A DNA stretch of 64,000 nucleotides, from assembly GCA_001643675.2 (NCBI GenBank), contig LSRY02000050.1, positions 124,001-188,000 on the forward strand, written 5' to 3'. Each line of letters opens with the position of its first letter. Positions within the stretch are counted from its first letter, which is position 1. The notes under the pieces are model-generated. The model worked only from the letters and a program-made list of their open reading frames with translations. It did no database searches and was not told where the DNA came from. The position numbers and the translations under genes are program-made. Positions 1 to 61,145 of this stretch are shown here, one piece after another. Source of the DNA: Monocercomonoides exilis PA203. Lineage: Eukaryota; Protista; Preaxostyla.

Positions 1-1560
1 TGGCTCAGAAACTAAATGAGTGCGAAAGGGAATCAAGTCGACTTTGGAAATGTTTGAGGCATTCTCCACAAAAAGATGGTTGCGGACAAAGGGATGGGGA
101 GAAGAAGAAGAAGTTGAAGGAAGAAGAAGAGGAAGAGGAGAAGGAGAAAGAGGCGGAAGAGATAAAGAAAGAGAACTTAAAGATGATGTTAAAGAAGAAG
201 AAGAAGAAGATGATGATGATGAGGGAGATGAGTACTGAGAAGATAAAAGAGGAGGATTCGTCGTTGGAGAAGAAGACGAGGGAGAAGGATAAGAAGAAGA
301 ATAAGAATAAGAAGAAGGAGAAGGATAAGAAGGATAAGAAGAAGAAAGAGTATGAATCGAATTTTCGACTGCTAATTCCACATGATTTCCATCTTTTTTA
401 TCTGACTTCTCTTACTCTTCAATCAACATCACTAGAGCTGCATTCAGCCTTTTCACATCATCTCGTGTCACATCCGCAATATCACCCACATAATCCAATT
501 CTTTTTCTTCTTCCTCTTCCTCCTCCTCCTCTTTTCTCACTTCTTTCTTTTCCTCCTTCTCTTTCTTCTTTTCTTTCTCATCTTCCAATGAAGAATTTGA
601 TAAGCTGTCTTTTTTATTCAATCCATTTGCTTTGCCCGATGAAACCTGCTTAAAAGAAGAGCCAGAATGACACGATGAATGCGAATTGCAGGACGACAAA
701 GAAGAACGAGAAGAGATGCGTGTATGTTCAGATGAAGAAGAAGAGGAGGAGGAGAAAGAAGAGGGAAAAGAATAAGAAGAAGAGAATGAGGAAGAGGAAG
801 AAGAAGAGGAAGAAGAAGGGAATGAGGAAGAGGAAGAAAAAGAAGAGGATGAAGAGGAAGAAGAGGAAGAAGAGGAAGAAGAGGAAGAAGAGGAAGAAGA
901 GGAAGAAGAGGAAGAAGAGGTAGAAGAGGAAGAAGAGGAAGAGGAAGAAGGAGGAGGAGAAGAAGAAGAAAAAGATGATGATGAATAAGGGAGAAGCTGA
1001 GAAAAAATTAAAATCTTCATCTTTTGTTAATATTTCCCCTTCAGAAACTGATACGGATGATTCAGACACTCTATTCATGGCACAAAAAAAGTTGATCAAA
1101 ATTTTCAGACTGCGTTTCATTAGTGTCTTCTTTCTTTTAATAGTTTTTATTCTTCTGAAAAAGGAAAACATTCAAATCCTCTTCTTCCAATTGCAACAAT
1201 GCTTGCTCTCCCTTCATCAGTCATATCCATTTCATCTTCTGCTTTCATATCTCTATCTATTTTCATTTCTTTTCCCTCTTCTTCTAAACCTTATTCTTCT
1301 TCTTCTTTCTCTGTATCTGCAAAACTTCCAGCTCCAATCACTTCTATCTCTTCTTCTTTTTCCTCTTTTTCTGCTTCTTCTCCAACGTCTTTGTCGTATC
1401 CCTCTCTTCCTCAAGTTTCAAGTACTTCTTCTGCTTCTCCATCACATTTGAATGTGCAATCGACTTATCCTTCTCCTTCTTCTCCTTCTTATTCATCATC
1501 TTCTCCTTCTTCCTTCCCTTCATCCTCCTCTTCCTCTTCATAATCTTCTTTCTCATTTTC
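1..1560. repeat. Low-complexity purine/pyrimidine-skewed region, including (GAGGAAGAA)n at about 845-960; probably decayed Glu/Lys/Ser-rich coding sequence
   Basis: GAA/GAG and TCT/TCC runs give overlapping compositionally biased ORFs in several frames, with no recognisable domain. Confidence 0.6.
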
Positions 1561-2543
1561 TCTTTCTTTCTTTCTTTTTTCTAATTCGTCTTTTTCATCA
1601 TAATAAACTACCACACCATATTATTTTCTATCTTTTCACATTCATCATTTAACAGATTAACTTTCCAGTGGTTTCGAAAAAGCAAGATTTTCCAAAATGA
1701 AATATTCTGAAAAATGAAAGACAACTCATTTGAATTGGTTTGCTGTTTCATGAACCTTTATGAGTAAAAGTTTTTCTAATAGAAGTGAAGCTTGTTCTTT
1801 TTTGAATGATTTGGAAAAAAAGAACTGTTCTCAACAAAAAAAGAAGCAACAGAAAAAATATGATGTGAAAACGAAAGCTGAGAATAAAAACAAGGATTGG
1901 ACTGAGTGAGAAAAGAAGATTAGTTGAAATATTGGGGAATAGGAAGTTAATTAAAGAAAGAGAATTGGAAATCGTTGTTCATTTGTTTCAATTGGCTTTA
2001 TAAAAGAAAATATATAATGTTGTTATAAAGCTCAAAAAGAAAGATGCTGATCAAATGAAATATGATTATTAAAAAGAAAACCTTGGAAATTAAACTTGAA
2101 AAACGATCAATTTTCTGAATATTTAACTTCGATCCATGAAGATGAAATCCACAAGGAAGCAAAGAACGCAGCAATTTTATGATTTCTAAAGATAAAAATG
2201 AAAAATAACAAATGTTTGATTCTTGTGAGTTAATATGTTGCAAACTATTTCAACTCTTGTTGCATTTTCTTTTTATATGCATTGGCTGAGAATAAGAAAT
2301 GAGTATCTCACAGAGTTTTCCTAAGAATTGATATTGAACCTCATTGAAAAAAGCCATGGATGAGAAACTTATTCATTCTCGGCAAGAAAACAGCTTCAGG
2401 GTTTCATTTCAGTATCGAGGCATTGATAGTGAACAATCCTTTTGTAATTTTCTTTGAAACGACATTTCATTATTGAAAAAACAAAAGGATGAAATAAAGA
2501 TATTTAAATGATGTTTAATTGAAAATTAATGTGACAGACGCAT

Positions 2544-5197
2544 TTATCTTTGGTTAATTAATAAAAGTGAATTCAGTGTCTCCAACTGAAGGGAATGTCT
2601 TCTGTCACCTGTAATTCTTCGAATTCGGGAAATAACACGTTCGCACGATGCTTCGCTGCATGGACATGAAATAAGGGACATGCTTATGTTGGCAAATATT
2701 GTAAAGAATAACCCTTTTGAACCTATTATAGAAAAAAACGAATGAGGATTTCGATCCATGTTGCAACATTCAATCGGAAAAAGGAACTCTCCGTACAGTC
2801 TTTACAATTAACCTTTATATCTTCCTTGAAGTCCTCCAATGATTGATCAACGTATTTATCGAAAGCTTGAATCAATCTTAAATCCCAAGATGTTAAATTG
2901 GAATTTTTGGTTTTCAAAATTTCGTTGTTTTTTGAAGCGTTGTCAGTTGCTTTTTGAGTAATTTTTCCGTTTGATCCCACTATTATCACATCAGCTTCAT
3001 CCTCATCTTCAATATTGCTGTTTTCATTTGTTTCTTCTTCATCCATTTGCGTCAATGTATTTGAAGCATCATTTCTCCCTGACAAATGCGAACGCAAAGA
3101 AAACGCGTCAGTGCTTTTGTCTTCCCTCTTGCTTTCATGAGATGAATTATACGAAAATTCATCATCTTCAGCCTCTAATTCTGCCTCAGTTAATCCAAAG
3201 ATATCCTCAAAAATTGTTTCCTATTTTGATTGCTTTTCTTCATTATACTTTTCTGTATTTTCAATCTCTACTGATTCCAGAACATCCAATAATGAAAGAA
3301 ACGATGAAATGTCACTGTATTTCGGAAAATTCGAAATACTACTATCTGTTCTTGCTATTGCGTCACTCGGGCATTCTGTTGAAACATCGTGACAGACAAA
3401 ACTTGATTGTGCAGGCTTCGTTGCTGCAAAGATCGCTTTTTCAAAAGACATTAATGAAAGCGGTGAATGAATGCTTTTGAATGAACATGAACTTTCATCT
3501 AAATTATCAGAAATAAAACAGGATGCTTTTTCCTCAACACTTATTTCGTCAATTGTTTGACCTAACAATTTCATTGCACTGTTTGCTGTTGTCGAGGAAG
3601 ATGAGGAAGCATTGCATGAGAAATCATCTTCATTGATTGGAAAAGATGTTCTTTTTGAATTTCTTGCACAAAATGATGAACATGAATTTGATTCACAGAA
3701 TGAATTTGTCAAATCTGATTCTTCGTTAACAGAAAAGGAATAATCTGTGCGTGAACGTGCTTTGTTTAATGAGCGATGAAGTAAATTTCCAATTTCCGTA
3801 TTGAAGAAGCTTGTGAATTGTTCGTTCCAAAATTGATTCAAACCAAATGGAGTTAACGAAAAAGCAAGAGCAATTATATCTCCTCTTTGACAAGTCAAAA
3901 AAGTGTTGTAAAAATCTATGTACAAATCTGTAGTGCATTTAGACCAAGATGGGATAATAAAATAACGGTTTTGAGAAATTGTGCAATATCTTCCACAAGT
4001 TTTCAATAATTCTGGAAAAACGTATCTCAATTTTGATGAATCTTTTTCTAAAAACAAATGCAACACATATAGGGGAAAAAGCAATATCTCAAATTTCAAC
4101 ACTTCCAAAATAAAACATTCTGTCAGAAGTTCTTCTTTTATTGCTATTTCTTTTTTCATCCTGAAATATTTGCACATCTGATAAATGCATGACCATCTTG
4201 TAGAAACAAATGTGGGACACTTACTCAAAAAAACATTTTTGTATTTTGAAAAATGAGTTTTTTTGGAAAACTCAATTATTTGCTGTAAAATATTCGATAA
4301 AAAATCGTTTCCGTTGATGATTCTTGAAAGAATTCGATTTCACAAATGGTTCATGCAATAGACAAAAATTGGACAGAATGAATTATGTTTTTTTTCTCAA
4401 ATGTCTGTAGACTCCACCGTATTTATTTGTTCAAGTGCAAGTTTCTGAGGCTTAAGACCATCACTGCAAAAGCAACGAACTTCAGAATTCAGATTTCTCA
4501 TTTCACACATCACAGACAATGATAGTTTTTCAAAATCGCTTTTTGTGTAACATGATGGATACAATTTCCAGAATAATGGTTTTGCATTCATTAACAAAGG
4601 GACAATATTTACTACAGTAAATTTTTGCCCAGCAACAACACCTCCATCCATCACAACAGCAACTGCTGTGTTTGAAACATATTTTGACACTAAGATTTCA
4701 TTCATTTTCTTTTCTTGAGACAATAAAGTTGAAACCTTTCTTGGTGTTATTTAAGGGAATATTAGTATTGAAGGAATTGTTGGATTTTGCTGAGAAACTT
4801 TGACAAGACCAGAAATGAACTCATTGAACTCTGTTGATGAAGCTGAAAGAAATGAAACATTACACTGGCTGATAAATCGAATGAACAAAGGTTGCATTTG
4901 CTTAAAAGGATTTAATTGACTTTTCATATTCTCCTTTTTTTGATTTGATTTTTCGACTTCATTTGATTTTGGTTTCATATAAAATTCCACACTTTGATTC
5001 GACAATAAATAACACTTGTGATTCTCAATTGAGTAATTGCCTCTTCTTCCTGAAAAACCGCACGCAATTCCTTTTTTTGAATTGGGGCACAAGAAATAAC
5101 GATGTCCATCCTTTTTTTGATTCCCGTCCGGCAAAACAGGTATGAAAGATATCCATAACACATTTTTGTAAATTTCTAATGATATTTTCGTCATCAT
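2544..5197 (-). pseudogene. hAT-superfamily transposase, disrupted
   Basis: ORFs 5197-4751, 4723-4397, 4228-3221 and 3097-2726 share one frame, separated by in-frame stops (TAA 4751, TGA 4397, TGA ~4340, TAG 3221), with a frameshift near 2760-2790. Motifs in hAT order: Cys/His zinc-finger-like N-terminus (FLCPNSKKGIAC...HKC), VVMDG, CSDG, CMNHL (CxxH, read through the stop), STRW, and C-terminal SCPCSEASCERVIS...RHSL..ETLNSLL. Confidence 0.85.
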
Positions 5198-5816
5198 TTT
5201 TGTTAAATCTCTTGGATGCCTATAAACTTATAAAAATTGGAATATTGAAAAATTCATTCTTTTCTACGAAGATAACGCACTGTTTCCTTTGTCTGTTGCC
5301 TTGATCAATTCCAATGAAACAAATTCACAGTTTTTGCTCGACAAATCATCCAACTTTTTGATGAATGATGCTTGCTTAATCCAGTCAAAAAAGCAAAAAA
5401 TGATAAAACGTAAAAACAAAAGCGATAAACAACATACGATTGTTGGATTAGAAAGAGATAGCTTTAGCTCCTGAGGGAGATTCGTTATGCTATTTGGATC
5501 CATAATCTTTAAACCAAGTGACAGACTTTTCCAGAAAGTGACTTCCAGTGGATTTTGAAATTCCAAGTTTCGCTGATCTTGTCAGTAAACCATAATTCAC
5601 TCAATTCACAACATTTTTAAAATTATATTATTAATATTCAATTATCATTCAAAAAAGTGTTGTCATTCTTATGAAAATTATTCCAATATAATGAACATTA
5701 AAAGTGAATATTTTTTCTGAAAAAAAAAACCAAAAAATGAGATTTCAAAAAAAGGTTTTGATCATGAAATAATTGTCCTGTCGGTCACCTGTGTCAGTTA
5801 CTGGAGAAATTTGCCA

Positions 5817-5833
5817 CTTGTCGCACAGGTCTA
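5817..5833 (-). mobile_element. hAT terminal inverted repeat upstream of the decayed transposase
   Basis: Reverse complement reads TAGACCTGTGCGACAAG, two mismatches from TAGGCCTTTGCGACAAG (the right end of the element at 19992). No partner end was found in the window. Confidence 0.7.
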
Positions 5834-10700: not shown

Positions 10701-11124
10701 CGAGAAAAAAATAAAAATTGTATTTTTAATGAAGAATAAAAAGATAAGTGAAGGAGTTGAGTCAATGATTTTTTTTTTAATTGCAGTTTCCTGAATCACA
10801 CAATTTTCGTTTGCCGAATCTGTTGAGTTGTTCAGCGGATACTGGAATATTTTGATGAGGTTTCAGCTGGATTAGTGAAAAGTGCATTTTTTTTTCCGCG
10901 GAAAAATAAAAATTCACTAATTTGTTGCATTTTTTTAAGTTCTTTGAATATTTTTACCCTTTTATTGGCTTTGTTTAACATGTTAAGTATCTTTTTTTTC
11001 AATGTGTTTTGTTGGTTAAACTTTATTAATTTTTAGGTTCATTTTTACAAAACTTGACCTGAAAAATTCTTTTCCACAAAAACATCAAAAAGCTTTTTTT
11101 TTATGTATATATAAATAAAACAAA

Positions 11125-14100
11125 TAGGCCTTTGCGACAGACCGACTTTTTTTTAACTGCTCGACAAGTCGACCGACAAGAGAGTCACAAAACTTTTTAT
11201 TAAAATAATTTAAAAATATTTATTTTTATATAACTCATTCTTTTACATGAATTTTTCTTGTTTTTGTTCAAAAAAATATTTTTTATTGCATTTGATGACA
11301 TACAACATTATTTTGAATTTTTTCTAATGAATAATCACAAAAAATGCATTTTTTAATGGGTTATCGACAGATCTTTGTTGAGGTCAGTCTGTAGAAAGAT
11401 CAGTCAGTCGAAAGATCAGCCGGTCGAGATCAACCTGTGGAATGTATAAACGATTTGTTTTATTTTATTGTATTTAATCAATAAATGAAATTGTTTTTTG
11501 TTTCGATTATTCAAAGAATAATATTCTGATTAAAAAAATGAAATAAAACAATAGAAGTTGATTGATTAATTTTTGTTGAATTTTCAAATCATTTGTGCAC
11601 AAATCCGTAGCTCGTTAGAAATTTATTTTGCATTCATCTCACAAAGTTCATTTCTTTACTGTTCAGTGAAACAAGAAAGAAGCATTCCAGATTTTGTTTT
11701 TATATTTGTGAGCAAACACTATTCTTGAGCAAATAACAGGAGAATGAATGCGAAACGTTTGAAAAAGATTTTTGTTCTGACTTTTTAATAAGATGAATAG
11801 ATAAAGAAGCAAAGTCGAATTTTCTATCCTAAAGACGAAGAATGGCTATTATCTGTGGAAATTTGAGCATTAAAATATTTGTTGAAAGAGGAAAAATTAC
11901 TCACAATATGAAAAATAAAGGGATGAGCGACACTCATGAACAACAAAGCTTTTAATGCAATTTTCGGAAATTTCAAATCGAGAATGAAGCTGTTAAGGAT
12001 TTTGAAAAAGAAATAGGAGCAAACGTTGTCAAATGAAGAAGAAGAAAAATGAACAATCTTCATGGTATTTGTTTTATTTTTTCACTTTTTCTCCTCCAAT
12101 TTTTCTTCTTCAAGAAGCACAACATTTCTTCATACTTCAACAAGCAAACAAAATCAACTGCAATCGTTGATCACTCTAAAATATCCTCTTCTCTTCCAGC
12201 TGACAATTATTGCACTTCTTCTTCTTCATCTTTTATTTAATCTGCACATGAGTTTGAAGGGAAGAAAAGAGAGAAAAGACTGAAGTGAAAGTGAGGGAAA
12301 ATAAGGTGATGAAGGAAATGCATTATCAGCCAAAAAGCAATGATAGTGAAAGTGGAAAGAAACCATATAAACATCAAACACAAAGCAAATACAAGGAAAT
12401 ATCTATGTTGGTACGAAAAATATTTATTTTTCTTTTTTGGTTGTTCTATTCTATTTTTCATAATATTCTATCTATGTATCTTCTATTTATTCTATTTGAC
12501 GTATTTTTCGAAATATGCTACTGTTAATTTCTTAGTATTTCCCACAGATTCATATTAGATTCTGCCCATGGCGCCTATAAAAGTTGAGTACAATCTCCTC
12601 CTCCGAAGATTCTCAATCCGAAAAATAAAAGTTTGAATATTTCTGCTTCTTCTTCCACAAAGTTGCTTTTTGTCAGTGAATTCATTCCATAACTGTCGCT
12701 CAAAGAATATGAACCAAACGCAAAGAAAATAACAAGTTTTTCAAATTCTGTTTGTCGGTTTCCATCCCGTTTACACAATATAAATCGAATTTCTCATTTT
12801 CAGTTCTAATTCCATCCACTACACTCTTCATCAAGAAAGACAAACCACCTCCTCCTGATCCTCTACCATTAGAAAAACACTTCTCCATTCCCATGTTATT
12901 ACATGATCCACAATATTCATCACACCTCTTCATAAAGTTCAATGCGGAAGCACTCGTATCAACGAGCCAAAAGACGGACTTTGCAACGAGTTCACATTCA
13001 CTTTTATATCTTTCTCTAGGAAATTTTCGAGCGTTCTGACATTGAGAATCATTCAGGAAGTAAAGAGCAGACTCAACAGCCTGTTCAGCCATCCCAAGCA
13101 ACAAAAATGATACAGTCGTTGAATGAAATCAGTTATTCTCCATTGGTATAAGATGAATTGCTGTCTTTTCATCCGGCTGAGAGGCGAAGAAGGGTTTTCT
13201 TCTCCTTAAAAATGTTATCACTGCATCTCTGTTATTCACCGCCTGGCTATGTGGATTCAGAAGTGGAGGGGAAGAAGAGGAAGAAGAGGGAGATCCAGAG
13301 AGAGAAGAGAGAGAGAGATACAGAGAGGAAAAAAAGGAAGGAGATGGGGATTGCTGGGTGAGTACAGAATGAAGAGGGATAAGAAAAGGAAATGGAGGAT
13401 AAATTATTTTTGTTTGAGAAAGCTTTCCTGCTGACTTTTCGCATGAGAATGCATTAGAGCAATCCGTTTTCTATCTCTGTTTCTATGTCGCTTCCGTTCC
13501 TGTTTTCGTTTCATTAACTGGTTTTATTCTTTTACGAATCTTCATCAACATCACAATCACTGTAATTTTATCATTCGAGTATTCATCTGTATTCTTCGCG
13601 ATCAACAAATTATCCATCGTCCAAAGGTTCCCTTTAGCTGACGCAGAGTTTAATGCAACACGGCCAAGAAGCAGCAGCTTGAAATTTACATGAGATGGCA
13701 TAGGGAACGAATGATATTGTTTGTGAGATATTTATTCAATCTGCTATTTCTTTATGTTTCTCCACTCGAATAAAAGGAGGATATAATCAGCCCAGCACTT
13801 TTAAAAATTTTCTTGAATGTTTCATATTGATGACCTTTCAAACTAACAAATGAAGGAGATAAATTAATGGAATTGGGCTGACTTTGCAGAAATGAGAAAC
13901 ACAAATAATGAAATAACCTGCATTGCTTTGTAACTTGCATTCGTTTCTTTAATAAACACTTCATTTATTATCATTCAACATTTTTTCATCAAACTTACTC
14001 TGAATATCTTTCACCGAAAAATACGAGGTCTGACCATCTCGTAAAACTGAAAATTGTGACAATCCCACTTCACGACACATCTCATCATCAAACTTTGGTG

Positions 14101-15682
14101 ATGTTCGATCTGCTCTTCATTGAATAAAACATATGAAACGCCTTATCATCCAAAACATGCACATTTGTCAGCTGCTTCTTCTCCTTCTTCTTCATCGGTA
14201 TCTGCTCCTCCTGTGTTAATACGAGAGCTTCAACCAGAATTAAAAACACTTGCCATTCCTAATGATGTGTATTCTTTCAACATCACAGACGCTATCTTCT
14301 GAGAAGCAAGTCTATTTTGGCACCCATAATCAGACGAGGAGAATGAAACAAATGATTTCGCACCTTCAGGCATGAAGTTAATCTTTTCCGTTGGTGTGAA
14401 GGGCAAATCACGCTGATATGAAGATTTCAAGCATTTACTCGAATCAGGCATTGAGTTGACCATCGGCGCTTTAATCTTTTCAACGATTGAGTTTGTGTGA
14501 TACACCTGTATCATTTTGGATTCGGTATTTGCATAGAAGAGCTCGAACAATGAAGCGGAGAAGGATAAAAGGTGATTGACAAAGTTTCTGATAGAAAATA
14601 AAAATCAAAACCAAAAGAGCTCCCTCACCTATTAAGGAGAGCAGGACTCAACAGCGCATTTATCGCTGACAACTCCTTCTGCAAAGCTGTTTGATGAATC
14701 GTGAAATATTCACTTTTGAATAAAGAGTCAGAAGGCATTCTTTACTGACACAATAATTATTGATAGCCAAAAAGGAATGTGGCAAATATCTCATTAATTG
14801 CTCCATTACTACTGACAACTTTTTGGACAGCTTGCTGAAGTGAGGCAGGATCATCGCTGTGCTCAATATGTTTGTTTTTGAATAAGATAGAGAAAGGTTC
14901 TTGTCCGAACGAAGGAATTTTTTCTGGATGCCCTCACATGAAGCTTCATTGGTGAATCTGCTGCCACTCGAAAGATCACTCAGCGAAGAACTGCTTTTTG
15001 AATTCTGAAGAAAGTTCACCTTCTTCTCGTTAGAGTGTTCGTTCGTCGTTTTCGTCTGCCGCTGTCTTGTTGAATCAGACTCTCCTTTTTGTGTTTAATT
15101 TGTTCAATCATCCTCTATCTCTCCTGACTGTCTGTGCGGCAAATTATAACTTGATGCTGCTTGAAGCAGATGAGCTACTATGCAACAAAACTTTTTTGCA
15201 CTATTCGCTTTTGCAGTTCAGTGCTATCTTTATTTTAACTTTTTAAATTCATTTCGGACGTTCTCTTTTATCCACATCTTTTGTTGATGGCTTGTGTGAA
15301 TTATTGAATCAATCTCTTCAATATATCACTTTCACATCCTCTCGTACCGCAAATGTCAATCCAGTTGTTTTTATTATGATATTTCCTTTTTGTTGATGTT
15401 TCAGAAATAATTAATTCTTGAAAGATAAAAACTTAATTTCTCATTTTCACAAGGATGTATTTTTCAAAATTGCAAAAAATCAGAATGAAGCTCAGATGCA
15501 ATTGAAAAGTTAAAGTTGAATGAAAGGTCACTGCGTATCGCCATATTTTTTAATTTACCAAAAATAAAAAAATAAAAATAAAAATAAAAATAAAAATAAA
15601 AATAAAAATAAAAATAAAAATAAAAATAAAAATAAAAATAAAAATAAAAATAAAAATAAAAATAAATAAATTAATAAATTAA

Positions 15683-15781
<99 letters not shown>

Positions 15782-15853
15782 AAAACTCCTCGACATTGAC
15801 CTTGTTTTTCGACCGACATGCACCGCTTTATTTTTCCTTGTCGCAAAAGCCTA
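11125..15853. mobile_element. Non-autonomous hAT-type element 1 with internal gene-like cargo (4.7 kb)
   Basis: Left end TAGGCCTTTGCGACA (11125) and right end TGTCGCAAAAGCCTA (15853). 8-bp direct duplication AAAACAAA at 11117-11124 and 15854-15861. Subterminal CGAC/GTCG motif clusters. Confidence 0.9.
15560..15785. repeat. Compound (AAAAAT)n/(AAAT)n microsatellite
   Basis: Directly visible, immediately inside the right subterminal segment of hAT element 1. Confidence 0.95.
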
Positions 15854-16899
15854 AAAACAAATATATATTGCAGAAATAAAAGCCAAACACTAATGAATAA
15901 CCAATTTAATTCTTTGATCAATAAATACCACAATAGATATTGTTGTTTGATTTTTGATCTTTTTAATGATTTCAAAAAAAAAACCACCCATCTGCTGTTG
16001 TATTTCACGATTAATAATGCAACATGCCATGTTAAAAAGATTAAAATACATTGCATATTTCATTTGTTAGATATATTAAATTGAAACAAAAATGAAATGA
16101 ACTAATAAGTAATAATAAAAAATTGATTGATACAACTATTGCAACTAGGCCTCTGCGACAGACCGACATTTTTTCATCAGCTCGACAAGTCGACCGGCAA
16201 GACATGAATCATAATTTTTCTTTTTTGATTAACGAAAAAACATTCAAATTAAAAAATGCACTTTTGTTTCCATTGAATTATTTTTTTTATAAATTATAAA
16301 ATATAATTTCACTGGATTCTAACAAATAAATATTTTATTTATTGATTTTTTAGAAATTTCAATGTGTTATCGACAGATTTTTGTCGAGATCAGTCGAACG
16401 ACAAAGATCAGTCGGTCGAAAGATCAGTCTGTTGAAAAGATCAATCTGTCGAACAGATTCACTTTTTTGAAAACATTTCTTCATTTCAGTGAATGGACAT
16501 TTATAACTTTTTTCATCAAAAATATCATATTTAATTTTGATAATTTTGAGAATAAAAAGAAATTGAGTCCTTGTCTGTTTGATTAATTTATTATTTGTCC
16601 AAAACCACATTTTGAAAACACTTCATCTTCTTGCAGATAATCACGTTATTCACGTTATTATTTGAAAATAGTTTTTTATTAAATTCCTTAATAATTACTC
16701 ATTTGAAGTTTTTTTAAAAAAACTCAGATTTGTGGAAATGTCAGGTCAACACACACGAAAAAGATTTGCAAAAGCCATTGCTTTGAATAATAAATACGAT
16801 GAATAAAGATTGAAGTTTGATAGAATTGTTTGCGGCTTATATTATTAGTAAATAAAAAGTGATAATTTGCACAAAATCATTGAACCTTCGTGCGTTAAA

Positions 16900-19334
16900 T
16901 TTATTCATTCATCCAGAAAAAAAATGATGAAATGAAAAAGGAAGAAGAAGAAAAAGAGGGAGAGGAGGAGGAGAAAGATTAAAAGGAAGAATAAAATAAA
17001 AGGAAAAAGGAAAAGAGATAAGGATGATGAAGAACAGAAAGAAACAATCAAAAAACAACAAAAAGAGAAAGGATTTGAAACTTCTCCTCCTCCTCCTTCT
17101 CATTCTCCTCTTTCCTCCATCACATCCATCTCATTTCAGAACATCTCCTTGTTCTGCCCCAATTTATGGTCTTTATCGCAGGCACAGCAACAAATTGTGC
17201 TCCTTCTGATTAAGAACTTCCTCCAAAACGTGCATTTGCTTAATCATCATCAACAATTCCATCAACAATTCCAGCAGCAATCCCAACCTTGTCATGAAGT
17301 TTCCTCTTCAAACAATACTTCTCCTATAATAAACCTTCCATCACATCCTTCTGCAATTTCTTCCATGCAAACGCTTTCTCTATCAATGTCATCAATGTCG
17401 CATTCGCAATATGCACAACAAATTGTGAACCAACCTATTTTCATTCCATTAACGGCTCATTGAAAGACTTTTCCATAAGACAAAGCAAACACACAAATGA
17501 CAGAATTAAATTCTTTTATTTCTGATTCTCAGCTGCATCCACAGTAAAATAACAGACAGCAGCAACAACAACTAATTGCAAATACTTACGCAACACTTCA
17601 AAATAATCAAACTCCTCCTAAGATGACTTCACCTCAAAACAACAGTGTATCTCCATCACCTGATTCATCTGCTTCTTCCTTTTCGCCTTTTCCTTCTTCA
17701 TCTTCCGACACAACTTTTTCAAATGTTGCTGCATCTTTTTCATCACACGGCAAACCCATCTCTTTGCAATCACCTTCAATTTCACCTTCAGCTGAGTCAG
17801 TTAACGTCGATTCGACGCATCTTTGGATGCTGGACACGATTGCCATAGGGCAGAAAGTTGTGCGGAAGCGGCTGTGGGACCTGTGGAAGTGGGCAATCCA
17901 GAATGTGCTGAAAGGCGAGAGGAGGAAGCGAGAGAGCTGGAACTGGCAGCACATCAACCAAAAGCAGAGGTGCGACGGGTTGCAATAGATGATGGAGAGG
18001 GTGCGGTATCCGCGAGCGATGGATTAAGAGACGCTGGGCGAGGACATGAGAGACAGAGTGAAGGAGTCTTTTGCGGAGGTCTGGGGAATCATGATGAACT
18101 AGCACTTTTGAAGGAACAAGAGGAATTTGGAGAGAATGAGGAATAATTTTCCGGAGGGAAATGCAAGAGATGACACGTTGTTTACAAGATTGATTGAAGA
18201 ATACGAAACAAAGAAGAAAAAAAGGCAAAACAGAAGTGAAAGAAGAAGGAGCAGATGACTCGAAAGACGAATAAGATACAAAAAACGACAGACCGTGGAA
18301 GAGTGCAGCAGGGGGAGCGAACGAAGGAGTTCGGATGGGAGAGGAAGGAAGGGAGATCCAGATGCGACAAGAGAAACAGAAGAAAAAGCAGAGGGAAGCA
18401 ACAATTGCAGCAAATCAGAAGCATCAGGAGATTGAAGAGCGATATGTGCAAAGAAGATTGGACCTGAAATGAGAAGAGAAAGAAAAAAATGTTTGAAAAA
18501 ATTTTGAAAGGTGAGCGAAAGAAAATGGCAGATCAAGAAAAGCAGCTGCGGAAGGAGGAGGAGGCTGAACAGAGCCGAATCCAATCGGAACTGAAAGAAT
18601 AAGAAGCGTAAAGGTTTCAAGATGAGAAGAAGTTTGCAGAGATTCGCAAAAATTTTAAGAAAGAGGAAGCAAAAGAGAAGATGAGGTGGCTGTGCATGCT
18701 GAATGAAAAGAAAATAGGGTGTTGTGGATTAAAGCTGCGTTGATGACGACGATAGCAAAGATAGATGTGGGATACAAGTTTGTGTGCATGCAGAACTTTC
18801 ATGTGTTGGGAGATGTGCAGTAGAGAACAGAGGACGATATGCAAAAGGAGAAGAAGCGAGAAGGAAGAAAAAGAGAGAAAGTGGGAGAGAAAGAGAAAAA
18901 GAACTGGTATGAAATGAGGAGAAAAATTAAGAAAGCTCAGAAAGTTCGAAAAGGCTTCTTCAAATAGCGAATTTTCTGAAACTCCAGCTTTGCTTCAGTC
19001 TCTTTTTGATTTTCAGTCAACTCTTCATCAGCTAACAGCTCCTTCCACAACACACGATGTTCCAATTCAAGATTCCATTACTGACTGCACACGACAAACA
19101 GTAAAATCACAAAATAACCAGCCAATGAGATCAATTTCCACATATCCAGCATCTGCACCTCATTTCTCAACATCAAATACAACTTCGTATCCTTCTCCTC
19201 AATGTCCTGTGTTCATATTACCATCTTCTCAGGCTTCGCTTTTATCAAATTCTGCTATTTCAACACAAAACAAGAGCCTTTCTCACTCACTCCATCTTCT
19301 TCTTGTTCCTTATGTTAAAGAAATGCTTTTTTAA
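16900..19334 (+). pseudogene. Decayed low-complexity (Ser/Pro/Gln- and Glu/Lys-rich) gene carried inside hAT element 2
   Basis: Successive plus-strand ORF fragments (17149-17463, 17623-17988, 18255-18467, 18990-19334) with protein-like content, interrupted by stops. Confidence 0.45.
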
Positions 19335-19863
19335 TCAATTTTTGCTTTTGCTCATCAACTTTCATTTGTATTTGTAATGAGCTTTTTCAATTATATGAAA
19401 AGAAACTGGATGCAGTCCATTGACAGTGATATATTAAGATCACGAAAATATTAACAAATAATGGAACAGGCATATGAAAACAAATTCAAACAGAATAGCT
19501 TCAAAATTTGCAATTTCATATTATTTCGATTGTCTGAACTTGAACTGAATATTTTCTTGGATTTATGAAATAAATTTATGTTTCAATTTTTTTGTTTGTT
19601 TTAAGTTTGATTGAAACATTTTCGTGTTTTCATTTCATCTTCTGAAGTTAAAAAAATTAGTTTTGTTTTCAATAATTCTTGTTTTGGCTTTCTTCTTTCA
19701 TAATTGAAGTTAAAAAAAAAGAATTTTCTAAACTAGTTAAATACAATTATTCCTTCATGTGAAAATAAATTTTTATCTAATTTTCAGTTTAGAAAAAATT
19801 CAGAAACAAGCAGAAAATATCAGAAATTATAAATTCTTTATGAATTATATTTATTTTTTTTCG

Positions 19864-19922
<59 letters not shown>
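19864..19922 (+). repeat. Poly(A) tract, about 59 nt
   Basis: Directly visible, immediately before the right subterminal segment of element 2. Confidence 0.95.
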
Positions 19923-19923
<1 letters not shown>

Positions 19924-20519
19924 ACTTCTCGATATTGATTTTGTCTTTCGACCGACATGCCTCGCTTTATTTTTCCTTGTCGCAAAGGCCTAATTGCAAC
20001 AATACTTCACAATGTTATAACCAAATAAAGACTTCCTTAAAGTATTTTCCTTTTCATGCACATCAAAAAAATCATCATATAAATGTCGTATCATTCAAAA
20101 TTTTCAGTTTTTCATGATTTTTGTCAAAAACGATGAAATGCGAAACACTCATGAAAAAATAGGATAAAACATAAAACAATCGGAATAATAAAACTTCATT
20201 GTGTGTGTTTTATGGCCTTGTGTTTAAAAATAAACAAAAAAAGAAAGATAGTCCAAAATGGACAAAACAAATGCTCAAAAATTAATTAAAAAATCCCAAG
20301 ATCTTCATCAAAAATAAAAATTGACAAAAAATTTTTTTTGGATGAACGTTAAATACATATTCAAACATGGTTCAATATGCTTTTTCAATTTTCAGTTTTT
20401 ATTTATTGAGAAACGCCAATTAAAAAAAATGTCCGGATAAAAAATCACCCAATCTCATTCAGGTTCAATGCCGGATCGATGAACGATGATGAAACAAATG
20501 CAAATATAAACATATTTAT

Positions 20520-21722: not shown

Positions 21723-24695
21723 ATGTTTTTGTTTGTGAGCATTTTTTGCTGTGTCTACGACGTCAATTGCATTAAAAAGAAAGGAGATGAAGACATGCAA
21801 ACAAAAAGAGAAAAGGGGGATGCGTTTTTCTCAAGAAATGTTAATTATTCTTCTGAAGGAATTGATTGTCCGAGTCTTAATTCTACCGCACGCTTACACG
21901 AACGTAAAGAAATAATAGAAGACGATGAAGGAAACATGGACCAAATGCACGAAAGATGCCTCGAACACCTGAGCAGAAAAGCCTCTTTTTTGAATTTGGA
22001 CGATATCAGCTTGCGAAAAGAGAACGAGAAAAGAATTACCGAATGCCATTCTGAAATTACATATAAAGAAATGGAACTCAATGAAGAGAATGAAGTTGAA
22101 GTTGATGGAGAAAACGGGGTTGACAGTGAAGAATGTGGACTATCAGGGAATACACCATGCAAAACTATTAAAAAGGCAGTGGAGCATTGTGAGCCTGAAG
22201 GAAAATTATTGATCCACACGGCAGAAACCAGCAATAAATTCGATACTGAGCCAATAATAATTGATGGGAGACACATCGAACTGAAGAACAGAGACCAAAA
22301 TGTCATTGGTATTACAACAGCTTTAGACGAAAAGAAAGTCAAAAATGGTGATGCCTTGTTTTGCGTTAAAGGCATAGGATATTTATACATTTGCTATGCC
22401 GATATTTGCGTGAATACAAAACGAGAAAGTGGAAGAAATCAAGGATTACTTGTTGTGGAAGGAGAAGGTTCACAAACAAAATTGGAAAAAACGAATATCA
22501 GCAATATAGAGACTGGGAATGAGCTGAGCTGCGTGCTTATTGAATGCAAATCTGGAGAATTGATGTTTCAGAGCATAGAGATTTCACATTTTGTATCTTC
22601 CTGTGCACTGATACTTGCTGAAGCCTCTCAAAAAATTGAAATTTTCGCCATGACATTGGACTCGATCACCACGAAAAGCAAAACGCAATCGGTCTTGACT
22701 ATGATGGGAGGATGCCAATCTGCAAAGTTTGATGATTGCACTTTTACAAATTGCTGGTCAACAGAGCACAAGTTGGGAGGTGCAATATATTTGGAAATAA
22801 CGAATAGCGAGCATCCTTGCTTGTTTTTTCGAATGCATTTCACGAATTGTTCGTGCGAAAGCGCAAACGCGAATGCAGATAGGCTGAGTGCTCATCTGAA
22901 TGACGAGTCAAAAGGAGGAGCGATGTTTATTCAATCCACGGACGAAGTCACAAAAACGCTGAAACTTGAATTGAAAGATATGGAGTTCATGAAATGTGCA
23001 GCAGAGAAAGGGGAATATATTTACTTGTCTTTCCCAGCAGGAAGAAAGCAGATCGATGAAGATCAATTTTATTTAGAGATGGAAGGGATTTACGGGAAGA
23101 AGAATTACATATTGCTCGAAGATAGGAAAGATGGAAGAATTATTGACCTAATAGCAGACAAAGAGAACATATTGCCATACCATTCAGAGAACATCTTTGT
23201 TGGAAGCGAAGAAGCAAGCAACGAGAAAACATGCGGGCGAAAAGAAGAACCTTGCTCTCAATTAAGTGATGTTGCCAAACACAAATCTTGGAAAAATCGC
23301 ATGTCATTGTATATCATCGAGAAAATCTTTGTCAATGAGCCGTTTTCTGGATGCCAAGTTACAAAGTTTTCTTCTGTTAATGATTCCATATCAATGCCTT
23401 CATCGAAAGGTGAACAGAGCAGAGGAACCGTTCGAATTGGAGCAAATATAAAAACCGACTTTGCACTTGCAGTGTTCGGAGACGAAATCAGCATGTTTTC
23501 ATTTTTTCATTTGGATTTTGAATATCCAGACGCGATCGAAGGAGATGCGCTAACTTTGATATACGGGGAATGTGTTTTCCAGATTACAGATGTTGTATTT
23601 CGGCCTTGGTTCACTGGCTTGAAAGGTGAAAACGTGCTTGGAGATGAAGGAAAATTACTTCTATATAAGCTGATTGAATTTGGGCGAGTTACTACAGAAT
23701 TTTCACAACTTGTTATTTACGGAAGAAACAAAAATATCACCCAAAAAAGTCAGCGTGGGAGCGATGAGGCAGCTTGCAGCCTCAGAGCTTTTCGGAATGC
23801 AACAAACGAGGAACATTTGAATCAGGGGAATGAAGAGAACAATCTGTTGTGTTCGTGGGATTCAGGACTTTAATTTCTGAATGAATCGTCTTTAGCATAT
23901 GTTAATGACAGCTCATTTATTGACATTGGCGATGGAGCAATACTTTCTCATTCAACTACGTTGCATTTGTACAACTGCAGCTTCATAAACAACCATCCAA
24001 TCGATGCTAGCTGGGAGAAATTTCCATCTTTGCGGCACAATGTAAGAAGCAATGGAGATTGGATTCGAGTGGAATCGTTGTCTCCAGGAAGTGATGGGCT
24101 TGATGGGAAGCCATTTGGAATGCTGTCTAATGAAGAAGCATCTGGAACAGCTGCTGAGAACATGGATTCATATTTCTTTTCACCCATTTTGAAGAATGTG
24201 ACGCTGAAAAGAGATGACACCAGCAAAAAGAATGAACTGCAAAGAGAAAATGAAATTGAGAAAGAAATCGAAGCAGTTGCGCACGGGTCATATTTGTTTC
24301 CGTGTGGACTTACGTTTGAAGTGTCCAAAAAAAGGAAAGGAGAAGAAATGAAATGGACAAATTGCCCAGTTTCTGAATACACAAATGAGACAGAAATGAA
24401 AGTGAGGATTCCTCCGTCTTTGTTTGAAGTTGATGATTACACATCAGTTGTTTGTCGCTTGACTTATTCGAGTGGAATTATAAATGGAGAGAATAAGCAT
24501 TCTGCAAATGTAATTTTGGTGAAACAGAAGAAAGACGATCCAAAGGCAATGCCCACCACGCATCTTGTTGTAATCATTGTTTCCACAAGCGTTTTTTCTG
24601 TTGTTGTGGTGGTGATTGTGATTGTGAGTATCGTGTGCGTGAAAAGAAGCAAAAAGCGAAGGCAGTACAGCGCTTTCAAATATGTAAAACAATGA
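21723..24695 (+). CDS. Large putative surface/membrane protein (signal-like N-terminus, beta-helix-like FxNC...GGAI repeats, C-terminal TM helix) with one in-frame TAA at 23871-23873
   Basis: ORFs 21723-23873 and 23961-24695 are in the same frame and the sequence between them is open. Features include two CG...PC motifs, GGAIY/GGAMF repeats, and a hydrophobic segment LVVIIVSTSVFSVVVVVIVIVSIVCV followed by basic KRSKKRR. Confidence 0.75.
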
Positions 24696-60516: not shown

Positions 60517-61080
60517 GCCGCCCGTTGATCCGCTGAGTGTTTAAATACTACCCAGTGCCGATGCAGGTCCTGTTGCAGTGTTTTCAATATCCATGATCTG
60601 ATAAGCGACTGAGCCCTTAATACAGGCTCTACTCCCATTACAAGAGGTGTTGTTGTTATCGTTTGTTCTGGAGAATTATGGAACTCTGTTCTTTAATTTG
60701 AAAATGAAATGAAACTATCTTGAGATGTCACTTGCATATTCTGTTCTTCTGCTTCTTCTTATGTATTTTAAGATAAATTGACTGGAAATGAAGAAAGAAA
60801 TCACTGACTTCTGTAACGCATCAATATTCCGATAATCGCTTTCACGTCAGTGAAAATTGAATCATGGAAAATCTGATTTTAGGTTTTTTTTATTTATTTT
60901 ATTTTTTTTTTTTTGACGTGGAAATTTTTGTCACGTCCGTCAAAAATCGAAAATGTTATATCATAAGTTACCACGTCACACAGCACTATTATAAATATTA
61001 AAAAAAATAAAATTCAATGCAAACAAGAAATCAGTATTACAATTTAAATGTTTTTTCTTTTATCAAAAAACAAAATACAA

Positions 61081-61145
61081 GCCGACTGTCTTATCAGTCG
61101 ATTTGTCGAGCAGATGTCAAAATATCGGCATGTCGCAAAGGACTT
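61081..61145 (-). mobile_element. Degenerate orphan left end of the TAGGCCTTTGCGACA hAT family
   Basis: GTCGATTTGTCGAGCAGATGTCAAAATATCGGCATGTCGCAAAGGACTT resembles the reverse complement of 16146-16195. Confidence 0.65.

Follow-up and report, generated by a model that had tools for sequence, protein, structure and literature searches.

Within a 64,000-nucleotide stretch of the genome of Monocercomonoides exilis PA203, an oxymonad protist that serves as the reference amitochondriate eukaryote, two neighbouring DNA transposons, here called E1 and E2, share their ends and carry unlike interiors. This stretch (hereafter the window, to whose numbering positions refer unless a contig is named) is C48:124001-188000 of the 101-contig, 82.3-Mb assembly in which all genome searches were made. 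We consider it probable that both are decayed, non-autonomous members of one M. exilis hAT family and belong to two of its Pack-type, or transduplicating, subfamilies. Candidate host-gene donors lie outside the elements, namely an open reading frame (ORF) of 9,387 codons on contig C2 for E2 and, less firmly, an ORF cluster on contig C25 for E1. An earlier note on this DNA had read the pair as a hAT-based system for capturing and duplicating gene fragments. That Pack-hAT reading is supported here, with the amendment that the pair represents two old amplified subfamilies (29 copies for the E2 type and ~10 for the E1 type) rather than fresh local captures. None of the outcomes that the earlier note had named as refuting its reading was observed.

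Two elements with shared ends and unlike interiors

E1 and E2 lie in the same orientation, 292 bp apart, with their outer 15-bp terminal inverted repeats (TIRs) intact. Direct reading gives TAGGCCTTTGCGACA (left) and TAGGCTTTTGCGACA (right, reverse complement) for E1, and TAGGCCTCTGCGACA (left) and TAGGCCTTTGCGACA (right) for E2. TIRs of this family start with TAGGC or TAAGC and fit the YARNG-like hAT consensus at four of its five positions. When up to two mismatches are allowed, the 15-mer occurs six times in the window, compared with an expectation of 0.24. Each element is also flanked by its own perfect 8-bp target-site duplication (TSD), and the two units, their ends and their duplications are thus as the earlier note had placed them. 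The parts of the pair, including the shared end regions that we call the chassis, are as follows.

11125..15853, + strand: E1, classed as a non-autonomous hAT element of the E1-type subfamily, 4,729 bp, with TIRs, a perfect TSD and paralogous empty sites
11117..11124 (left) and 15854-15861 (right): TSD of E1, AAAACAAA on both sides, perfect at 8/8 positions
11125..11442, + strand: left chassis of E1, comprising the 15-bp TIR (11125-11139) followed by subterminal TCGAC, GACCGAC and GATCAGTC motifs, 68% identical to E2 1-308
12069..13636, + strand: cargo of E1, a decayed fragment with homology to a cluster of large ORFs, C25:2513858-2522697
15569..15785, + strand: A-rich microsatellite of E1 (microsatellite stretch 15681-15782), at the site of the poly(A) tract in E2 and in the autonomous element
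15786..15853, + strand: right chassis of E1, including the right TIR (15839-15853), 82-83% identical to the right end of E2 and 76% to that of the autonomous C12 element
15854..16145: spacer between E1 and E2, 292 bp, a mosaic of two other repeat families that are the targets of E1 and E2
16146..19992, + strand: E2, classed as a non-autonomous hAT element of the E2-type subfamily (29 copies), 3,847 bp, with TIRs, a perfect TSD and empty sites
16138-16145 and 19993-20000: TSD of E2, ATTGCAAC on both sides, perfect at 8/8 positions
16146..16488, + strand: left chassis of E2, comprising the TIR (16146-16160) and subterminal repeats, common to subfamilies with other interiors
17260..19303, + strand: cargo of E2, a pseudogenised copy of codons ~95-806 of the 9,387-codon, VPS13_C-containing ORF at C2:637155-665315, 76% identical to the host ORF at the nucleotide level
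19864..19922, + strand: poly(A) tract of E2, 59 nucleotides (nt), adjoining the right end on its inner side and characteristic of the family
19923..19992, + strand: right chassis of E2, including the right TIR (19978-19992)

The two elements can be aligned only at positions 1-318 of E1 with 1-308 of E2 (68% identity) and over their last 129 bp (82%). The shared left end of ~310 bp and right end of ~70-130 bp agree with the ~310 and ~70 bp noted earlier, and neither blastn nor tblastx found significant similarity between the two interiors, again as first described. Positions 1-343 of E2 recur at 81-83% identity at loci that lack the E2 interior. With lengths of 4.7 and 3.8 kb and apparently gene-derived cargo, E1 and E2 fall outside the definition of MITEs (miniature inverted-repeat transposable elements), which are short (usually less than ~800 bp) and have no coding-derived interior.

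A hAT family with an autonomous member

A 6,000-bp element at C12:135581-141580 has the features expected of an autonomous hAT transposon. It is flanked by a perfect TSD (GAGTTCAT), both of its ends match those of E1 and E2, and it carries a transposase ORF of 1016 amino acids (aa) with a C-terminal hAT domain. On the left, its similarity to E1 and E2 falls in two blocks, at positions 1-82 and ~254-312 (E2 matches at 1-55 and 254-312), and its right end, like theirs, consists of a poly(A) tract and then ~100 bp. The motifs TCGAC, GACCGAC and GATCAGTC occupy equal subterminal positions in all three elements and are nearly absent from the interiors of E1 and E2. Because ends, poly(A) and subterminal motifs are held in common with the autonomous element, E1 and E2 can be assigned as its non-autonomous partners and, on the same comparison, as non-autonomous members of a bona fide hAT family. 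The presence of poly(A) in the autonomous element also means that this tract is part of the chassis rather than a trace of retroposition. The assignment to hAT that the earlier note had based on 8-bp TSDs and short TIRs is strengthened by a transposase ORF with the hAT dimerisation domain (PF05699) in an element with matching ends.

Members of the family are numerous. A 22-nt pattern for the left end has 118 matches in the genome (a reversed control has 0), and a 28-nt pattern for the right end has 25. A six-frame scan of the genome with PF05699 gave 41 hits above cut-off, the C12 site among them, and many of these lie at the C-terminal end of open frames of 900-1016 aa, with a matching left end ~3.2 kb ahead. 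When whole ORFs were scanned at a cut-off of 21.4 bits, two loci scored above it (24.1 bits for L014 and 21.7 bits for L016) and the C12 ORF scored 19.7 bits. One transposase ORF of the genome matches M. exilis MONOS_15623. No match for an RNase-H-like DDE core in the family transposase was found among Pfam families or by sequence search of the PDB, and leads from a language model point to BED/ZBED1-RNase-like and BED/hAT clusters.

Two elements of 5.14 kb (C42:6529-11670 and C80:1901275-1906414) have the same chassis and, as judged from matches, a different interior. Their right 1.5 kb are 97.7% identical, and in both cases GAAACACA comes next, an agreement over 8 bases that may point to a segmental duplication. 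Other transposons have inserted into members of the family: a pogo-like DDE_1 ORF is nested in an E2-type copy (L010 3823-4548, - strand), and a Harbinger-like DDE_Tnp_4 ORF is nested in an E1-type copy (L023 4904-5944, - strand).

Target-site duplications and empty sites

TSDs were scored on 14 non-autonomous copies and one autonomous element. Perfect 8/8 duplications, all different in sequence, flank seven of the 14 non-autonomous copies (E1, E2, L002, L003, L009, L020 and L021), and the autonomous C12 element has one as well. Two further copies have a TSD matching at 6/8 positions, two have a near-match offset by one base and three have none (2-3 of 8). Matching TSDs are thus common among the copies checked, whereas the earlier note would have taken their rarity at paired ends as a refutation.

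Empty sites are available for both elements as paralogous copies of the repeats into which they inserted. A genome search recovered the E2 junction with a single ATTGCAAC at seven other loci, and in L042 the matches to the two flanks of E2 have exactly 8 bp in common. For E1, three loci carry the junction with one 8-mer only, each with three mismatches, and there the 8-mer is TAAACAAA and not AAAACAAA. Positions 1-138 of the spacer match at least 30 loci, the E1 empty sites included, and positions 137-292 match ~10 loci, the E2 empty sites included. Specifically, the repeat hit by E1 (window 15854-15991) exists in at least 30 copies of 82-90% identity, whereas the one hit by E2 (window 15990-16145 and 19993-20444; L042 1152-2099) is a palindromic element of ~950 bp with inverted arms of ~347 bp and ~10 copies. 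These junctions and duplications indicate that E1 and E2 each arrived by transposition and not by segmental duplication.

The earlier note had also called for empty-site alleles. Loose contig ends at 19993 were considered as such an allele in the sequencing reads and rejected, as they stem from seven paralogous copies of the repeat targeted by E2. These copies are good evidence for the boundaries of the E2 insertion and none for polymorphism or excision.

Elsewhere, two E2-type copies lie in inverted orientation 3.1 kb apart (C53:492158-496120, - strand, and 499224-503187, + strand). They have identical match scores, and the arrangement looks like a palindromic segmental duplication rather than two separate insertions.

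A large host gene as the probable source of the E2 cargo

Copies of the whole E2 element are present elsewhere at 94%, 90% and 89% identity, along with many further hAT-ended copies at ~70%. A search with the cargo region alone (E2 1115-3158), in which all 33 candidates were scored, yielded 29 loci borne by transposable elements (TEs) and a single locus without ends, C2:662898-665033. This locus lies inside an uninterrupted frame of 9,387 codons (C2:637155-665315, minus strand, no stops) whose C terminus matches the Pfam family VPS13_C at 28.9 bits (cut-off 21). Two of the cargo ORFs have weak Pfam matches to VPS13_N. No hAT ends were found around the C2 ORF in C2:630001-700000, which reaches 7 kb past one end of the ORF and 35 kb past the other. 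Homology to the host ORF spans nt 257-2825 in the longest copies (codons ~86-940) and nt 283-2418 in E2. Since it holds neither the start nor the end of the frame, the E2 cargo is an internal piece. Genome searches found only family copies of, and simple-sequence matches to, the remaining interior (E2 344-1114 and 3159-3718), including the ~560 bp of family-specific sequence between cargo and poly(A). Taken together, homology and context make the C2 ORF a well-supported donor for E2.

The mobile copies of this fragment that were examined are dead. The E2 cargo contains 14 in-frame stops and 6 frameshifts, of which 7 stops and 1 frameshift are common to the copies on C67 and C36, and all 13 E2-type copies examined are pseudogenes with 6-19 in-frame stops and 3-10 frameshifts each. 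Disabling mutations are likewise common to the members of other E2-type clades, which implies that the cargo kept spreading after its death. The 29 E2-type and ~10 E1-type loci have distinct TSDs, as expected of elements mobilised after capture.

In contrast to the copies, the host sequence bears the marks of constraint. The majority consensus of the 13 E2-type copies is 85% identical to the C2 host and regains an ORF of 415 aa in the host frame. Host and consensus differ at 9.7% of first, 8.1% of second and 18.2% of third codon positions, and this concentration at position 3 indicates purifying selection on the C2 frame. An unrooted tree of cargo sequences places the C2 host at its star-like centre and E2 in a young clade (tips 0.02-0.04, stem 0.16).

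The contig that holds the donor gene also carries, ~95 kb away, an E2-type copy that lacks the left end (C2:538839-543620, + strand).

A candidate donor for the E1 cargo

The closest copy of E1 (C32:215655-220024) is 83% identical to it and has its own perfect TSD, GGAAAATG. The E1 cargo recurs in ~10 distant relatives, most of which stand behind a left end of the same type. By tblastx the homologous region extends over E1 ~945-2512, with 70-74% nucleotide identity to C25:2518779-2520592 and to C21. The E1 cargo has many stops and is 51-60% identical at the amino acid level to an intact ORF of 595 aa.

The C25 locus (C25:2513858-2522697) is a run of minus-strand frames of 440, 380, 306, 363, 324 and 1163 codons. 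No hAT ends were found between these frames or in the ~5 kb that flank the run to its left and right; the closest TIR-like match is 5.4 kb distant. The 1163-codon frame is single-copy past codon 255. In an unrooted tree of E1 cargoes the C25 branch is the shortest and most central, and differences between C25 and a TE-borne copy on C21 are in ~1.7-fold excess at third positions. A large single-copy gene on C25 is therefore a plausible donor for E1, a weaker call than that for E2.

The C21 copy is a structure in its own right. At C21:467866-473551, 4 kb of sequence 91% identical to C25 is enclosed by hAT-like ends with non-matching TSDs. This cargo nearly shares one of its boundaries with the cargo of E1, and the end region has a short block in common with E1-type leader sequences. 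On the other side is a left arm of 1,078 bp that occurs in at least 24 copies, of which only three continue into the C25 fragment, and the junction of arm and fragment falls in a (GAA)n run.

Adjoining this structure is an intact ORF of 1,100 codons (C21:474146-477445, - strand; L032) with reverse transcriptase and tyrosine recombinase domains, which marks it as a DIRS-like retroelement. A further locus, C36:2131642-2132911 (- strand), is similar to the E1 cargo (68% aa identity) and overlaps an open frame of 1,857 codons; these matches suggest that the host may possess another paralogue of the C25 gene here.

Direction of transfer and alternative explanations

Several observations weigh against the capture of host-gene fragments. 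A putative donor could be traced for no more than a third to a half of the interiors, namely for ~2.0 of 3.8 kb in E2 and ~1.6 of 4.7 kb in E1, which leaves ~45% and ~65% of the respective interiors unaccounted for. The trees are unrooted, as is the direction of transfer read from them, and the C2 host segment groups with one TE copy, L009, on a very short branch. For E1, the C25 sequence is only ~72% identical to the cargo, the C25 gene matches no Pfam family, and a database search with its 1163-aa ORF found no homologues within the range of lengths covered. Furthermore, because the 91% copy of C25 on C21 lies between hAT-like ends with a boundary near that of E1, the history of E1 could comprise one capture, two captures or gene conversion.

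If the direction were reversed, the C2 and C25 genes would have gained their segments from hAT elements by exonisation or domestication, and the cargo would be native to the element. Unrooted trees with host sequences placed among the TE copies are compatible with this course, and so is the location of the C2 homology near the 5′ end of its open frame. However, TIRs and subterminal blocks are absent from both host loci, the segments in question lie within much longer continuous frames whose remainder is single-copy, and the autonomous element does not carry the cargo. In addition, every TE copy examined is pseudogenic, whereas the host frame appears to be under purifying selection. We regard the reversed direction as unlikely and infer that transfer proceeded from gene to transposon.

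A cargo that began as an accessory gene of the hAT family, that is, as a second element-encoded ORF and not as host DNA, would explain why the family consensus regains a 415-aa ORF and why each cargo is bound to one chassis across many copies. Yet this cargo has no gene start or end and equals the middle of a 9,387-codon host frame. Disabling mutations are common to clades, so transposition did not need the cargo ORF; the subfamilies differ in cargoes that are unrelated to each other; and an intact autonomous copy lacks such an ORF. An accessory gene is, on these grounds, very unlikely.

The 59-nt poly(A) of E2 and the A-rich microsatellite of E1, both just inside the right end, could be taken to mean that host complementary DNAs were retroposed into a short hAT MITE. 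This origin is highly improbable: the autonomous C12 element has poly(A) at the same site, the family-specific ~560 bp separate the E2 cargo from the tract, and the cargo is an internal ORF fragment with no 3′ end. A processed pseudogene or retrocopy was rejected for the same placement of the poly(A) within the chassis. Internal deletion is the commonest origin of non-autonomous hAT elements, but an interior of decayed transposase was ruled out and can be given almost no credence for E1 and E2, since seven autonomous copies match them at the ends only by blastn and tblastx, in line with the transposase-free interiors first noted, and a Pfam scan of 30 interior ORFs from E1, E2 and other copies revealed nothing transposase-like and nothing at all beyond the two weak VPS13_N matches.

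A model for capture and spread

Capture from host genes by a non-autonomous chassis would accommodate the observed anatomy, copy numbers, donor homology, pseudogene state and empty sites in the following way. Autonomous copies of the C12 type would supply transposase in trans to the chassis of E1 and E2. Each subfamily would descend from an element in which foreign DNA, with an internal piece of a host ORF in it, had taken the place of the transposase region: ~2.6 kb, corresponding to codons ~86-940 of the C2 gene with its VPS13 C-terminal domain, for the E2 type, and ~1.6 kb or more from the large single-copy C25 gene for the E1 type. The chimeric elements would then have spread by cut-and-paste transposition with 8-bp TSDs, reaching 29 copies (E2 type) and ~10 copies (E1 type), while the cargo decayed as a passenger. 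E1 and E2 themselves inserted into two different older repeats, with 292 bp between them and with like orientation.

The foreign DNA could have been acquired by either of two routes. Template switching may occur during repair of the gap left by excision, and the (GAA)n junction of the C21 structure is weakly suggestive of it. Alternatively, neighbouring insertions may be re-mobilised as one composite (Catoni; Gisby & Catoni, PMC8903248). The arrangement of E1 and E2 is precisely that required by the composite model, and no mobilised E1-E2 composite was seen.

More tentatively, and with the balance of our judgement against it, one M. exilis hAT chassis might be a serial collector of gene fragments that carries several cargo classes on closely related ends. 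These classes would be the fragment of the C2 VPS13_C gene (29 copies), the E1-type C25 fragment and the younger, 91% identical 4-kb C25 fragment. If so, Pack-hAT elements would be a substantial source of pseudogene fragments in this genome and of its unclassified repeats, and tandem same-orientation pairs such as E1 and E2 would be a live substrate for new composites.

Relation to known systems

Ac and Ds of maize are the autonomous and non-autonomous partners of a hAT system that has subterminal repeats, short TIRs and TSDs of 8 bp; when two of them are closely linked and directly oriented, they can transpose together as a macrotransposon. E1, E2 and the C12 element resemble them in pairing, TSDs, TIRs and subterminal repeats. 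They differ in cargo, most Ds elements being deletion derivatives or short elements rather than carriers of amplified host ORF fragments. Plant Pack-MULEs capture gene fragments between conserved termini and then amplify, as E1 and E2 appear to have done, but they belong to the Mutator superfamily and have 9-bp TSDs and long TIRs.

Closer parallels exist within hAT itself. Pack-hAT elements, among other Pack-TYPE transposons, are known in maize and rice (Gisby & Catoni 2022, PMC8903248), and they too are non-autonomous, lack transposase, end in TIRs, are flanked by 8-bp TSDs and enclose internal pieces of host genes, with conserved ends around interiors that differ between groups. Neighbouring same-orientation Pack-TYPE insertions are frequent in these plants and have been proposed as a route to new cargo (PMC8903248). 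E1 and E2 differ in residing in an oxymonad protist, in the amplification of one cargo type to 29 copies, and in the size of their cargo, which comprises 1.6-2.6 kb from single uninterrupted ORFs as compared with pieces of 58-280 bp in the worked examples of that study (PMC8903248).

In Dothideomycete fungi, histone H3 has undergone transduplication by hAT (Dhillon et al. 2019, PMC6710886). As described there, a hAT element took up host coding sequence that now exists in many copies, all inactivated, while the original gene is intact under purifying selection, as appears to be the case in M. exilis. According to that account, the fungal copies were killed by repeat-induced point mutation and a complete hAT carries histone-like sequence, whereas the M. 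exilis copies have ordinary stops and frameshifts and the carriers are non-autonomous, with an internal gene fragment only (PMC6710886).

In the published account of the M. exilis genome, DNA transposons are put at 4.5% and unclassified repeats at 35% of the assembly, an overlap between repeats and expanded gene families is pointed out, and hAT is not mentioned anywhere (PMC8767320). As far as a limited literature search could find, hAT gene capture is known from plants and fungi and has not been described for M. exilis. The present case would extend Pack-type capture by hAT from those groups to Metamonada. Amplification of hAT cargo would explain some of the pseudogene fragments scattered in this genome, and some M. 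exilis gene models annotated as hypothetical proteins may be dead transposon cargo. A donor together with 29 copies would also provide a clean system for dating capture and for studying its mechanism.

Neighbouring features

Directly downstream of the pair, at 21723-23873 (+ strand), is an ATG-started ORF of 716 aa that matches no Pfam family. On the other side, a decayed hAT element of autonomous type occupies 2556-5833 (- strand). By tblastn it matches the C12 transposase at ~40% identity, residues 36-555 aligning to 5332-3782 and residues 890-1016 to 2942-2556, and it has a PF05699 match at 2550-2756 and a TIR-like 15-mer at 5819-5833. A further fragment of the chassis left end lies at 60989-61145 (- strand; 156 bp aligned at 75% identity) and contains a TIR-like 15-mer (61131-61145), and another hAT left end is found directly upstream of the window at C48:119298-119319. 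The region around E1 and E2 is thus a cluster of hAT insertions.

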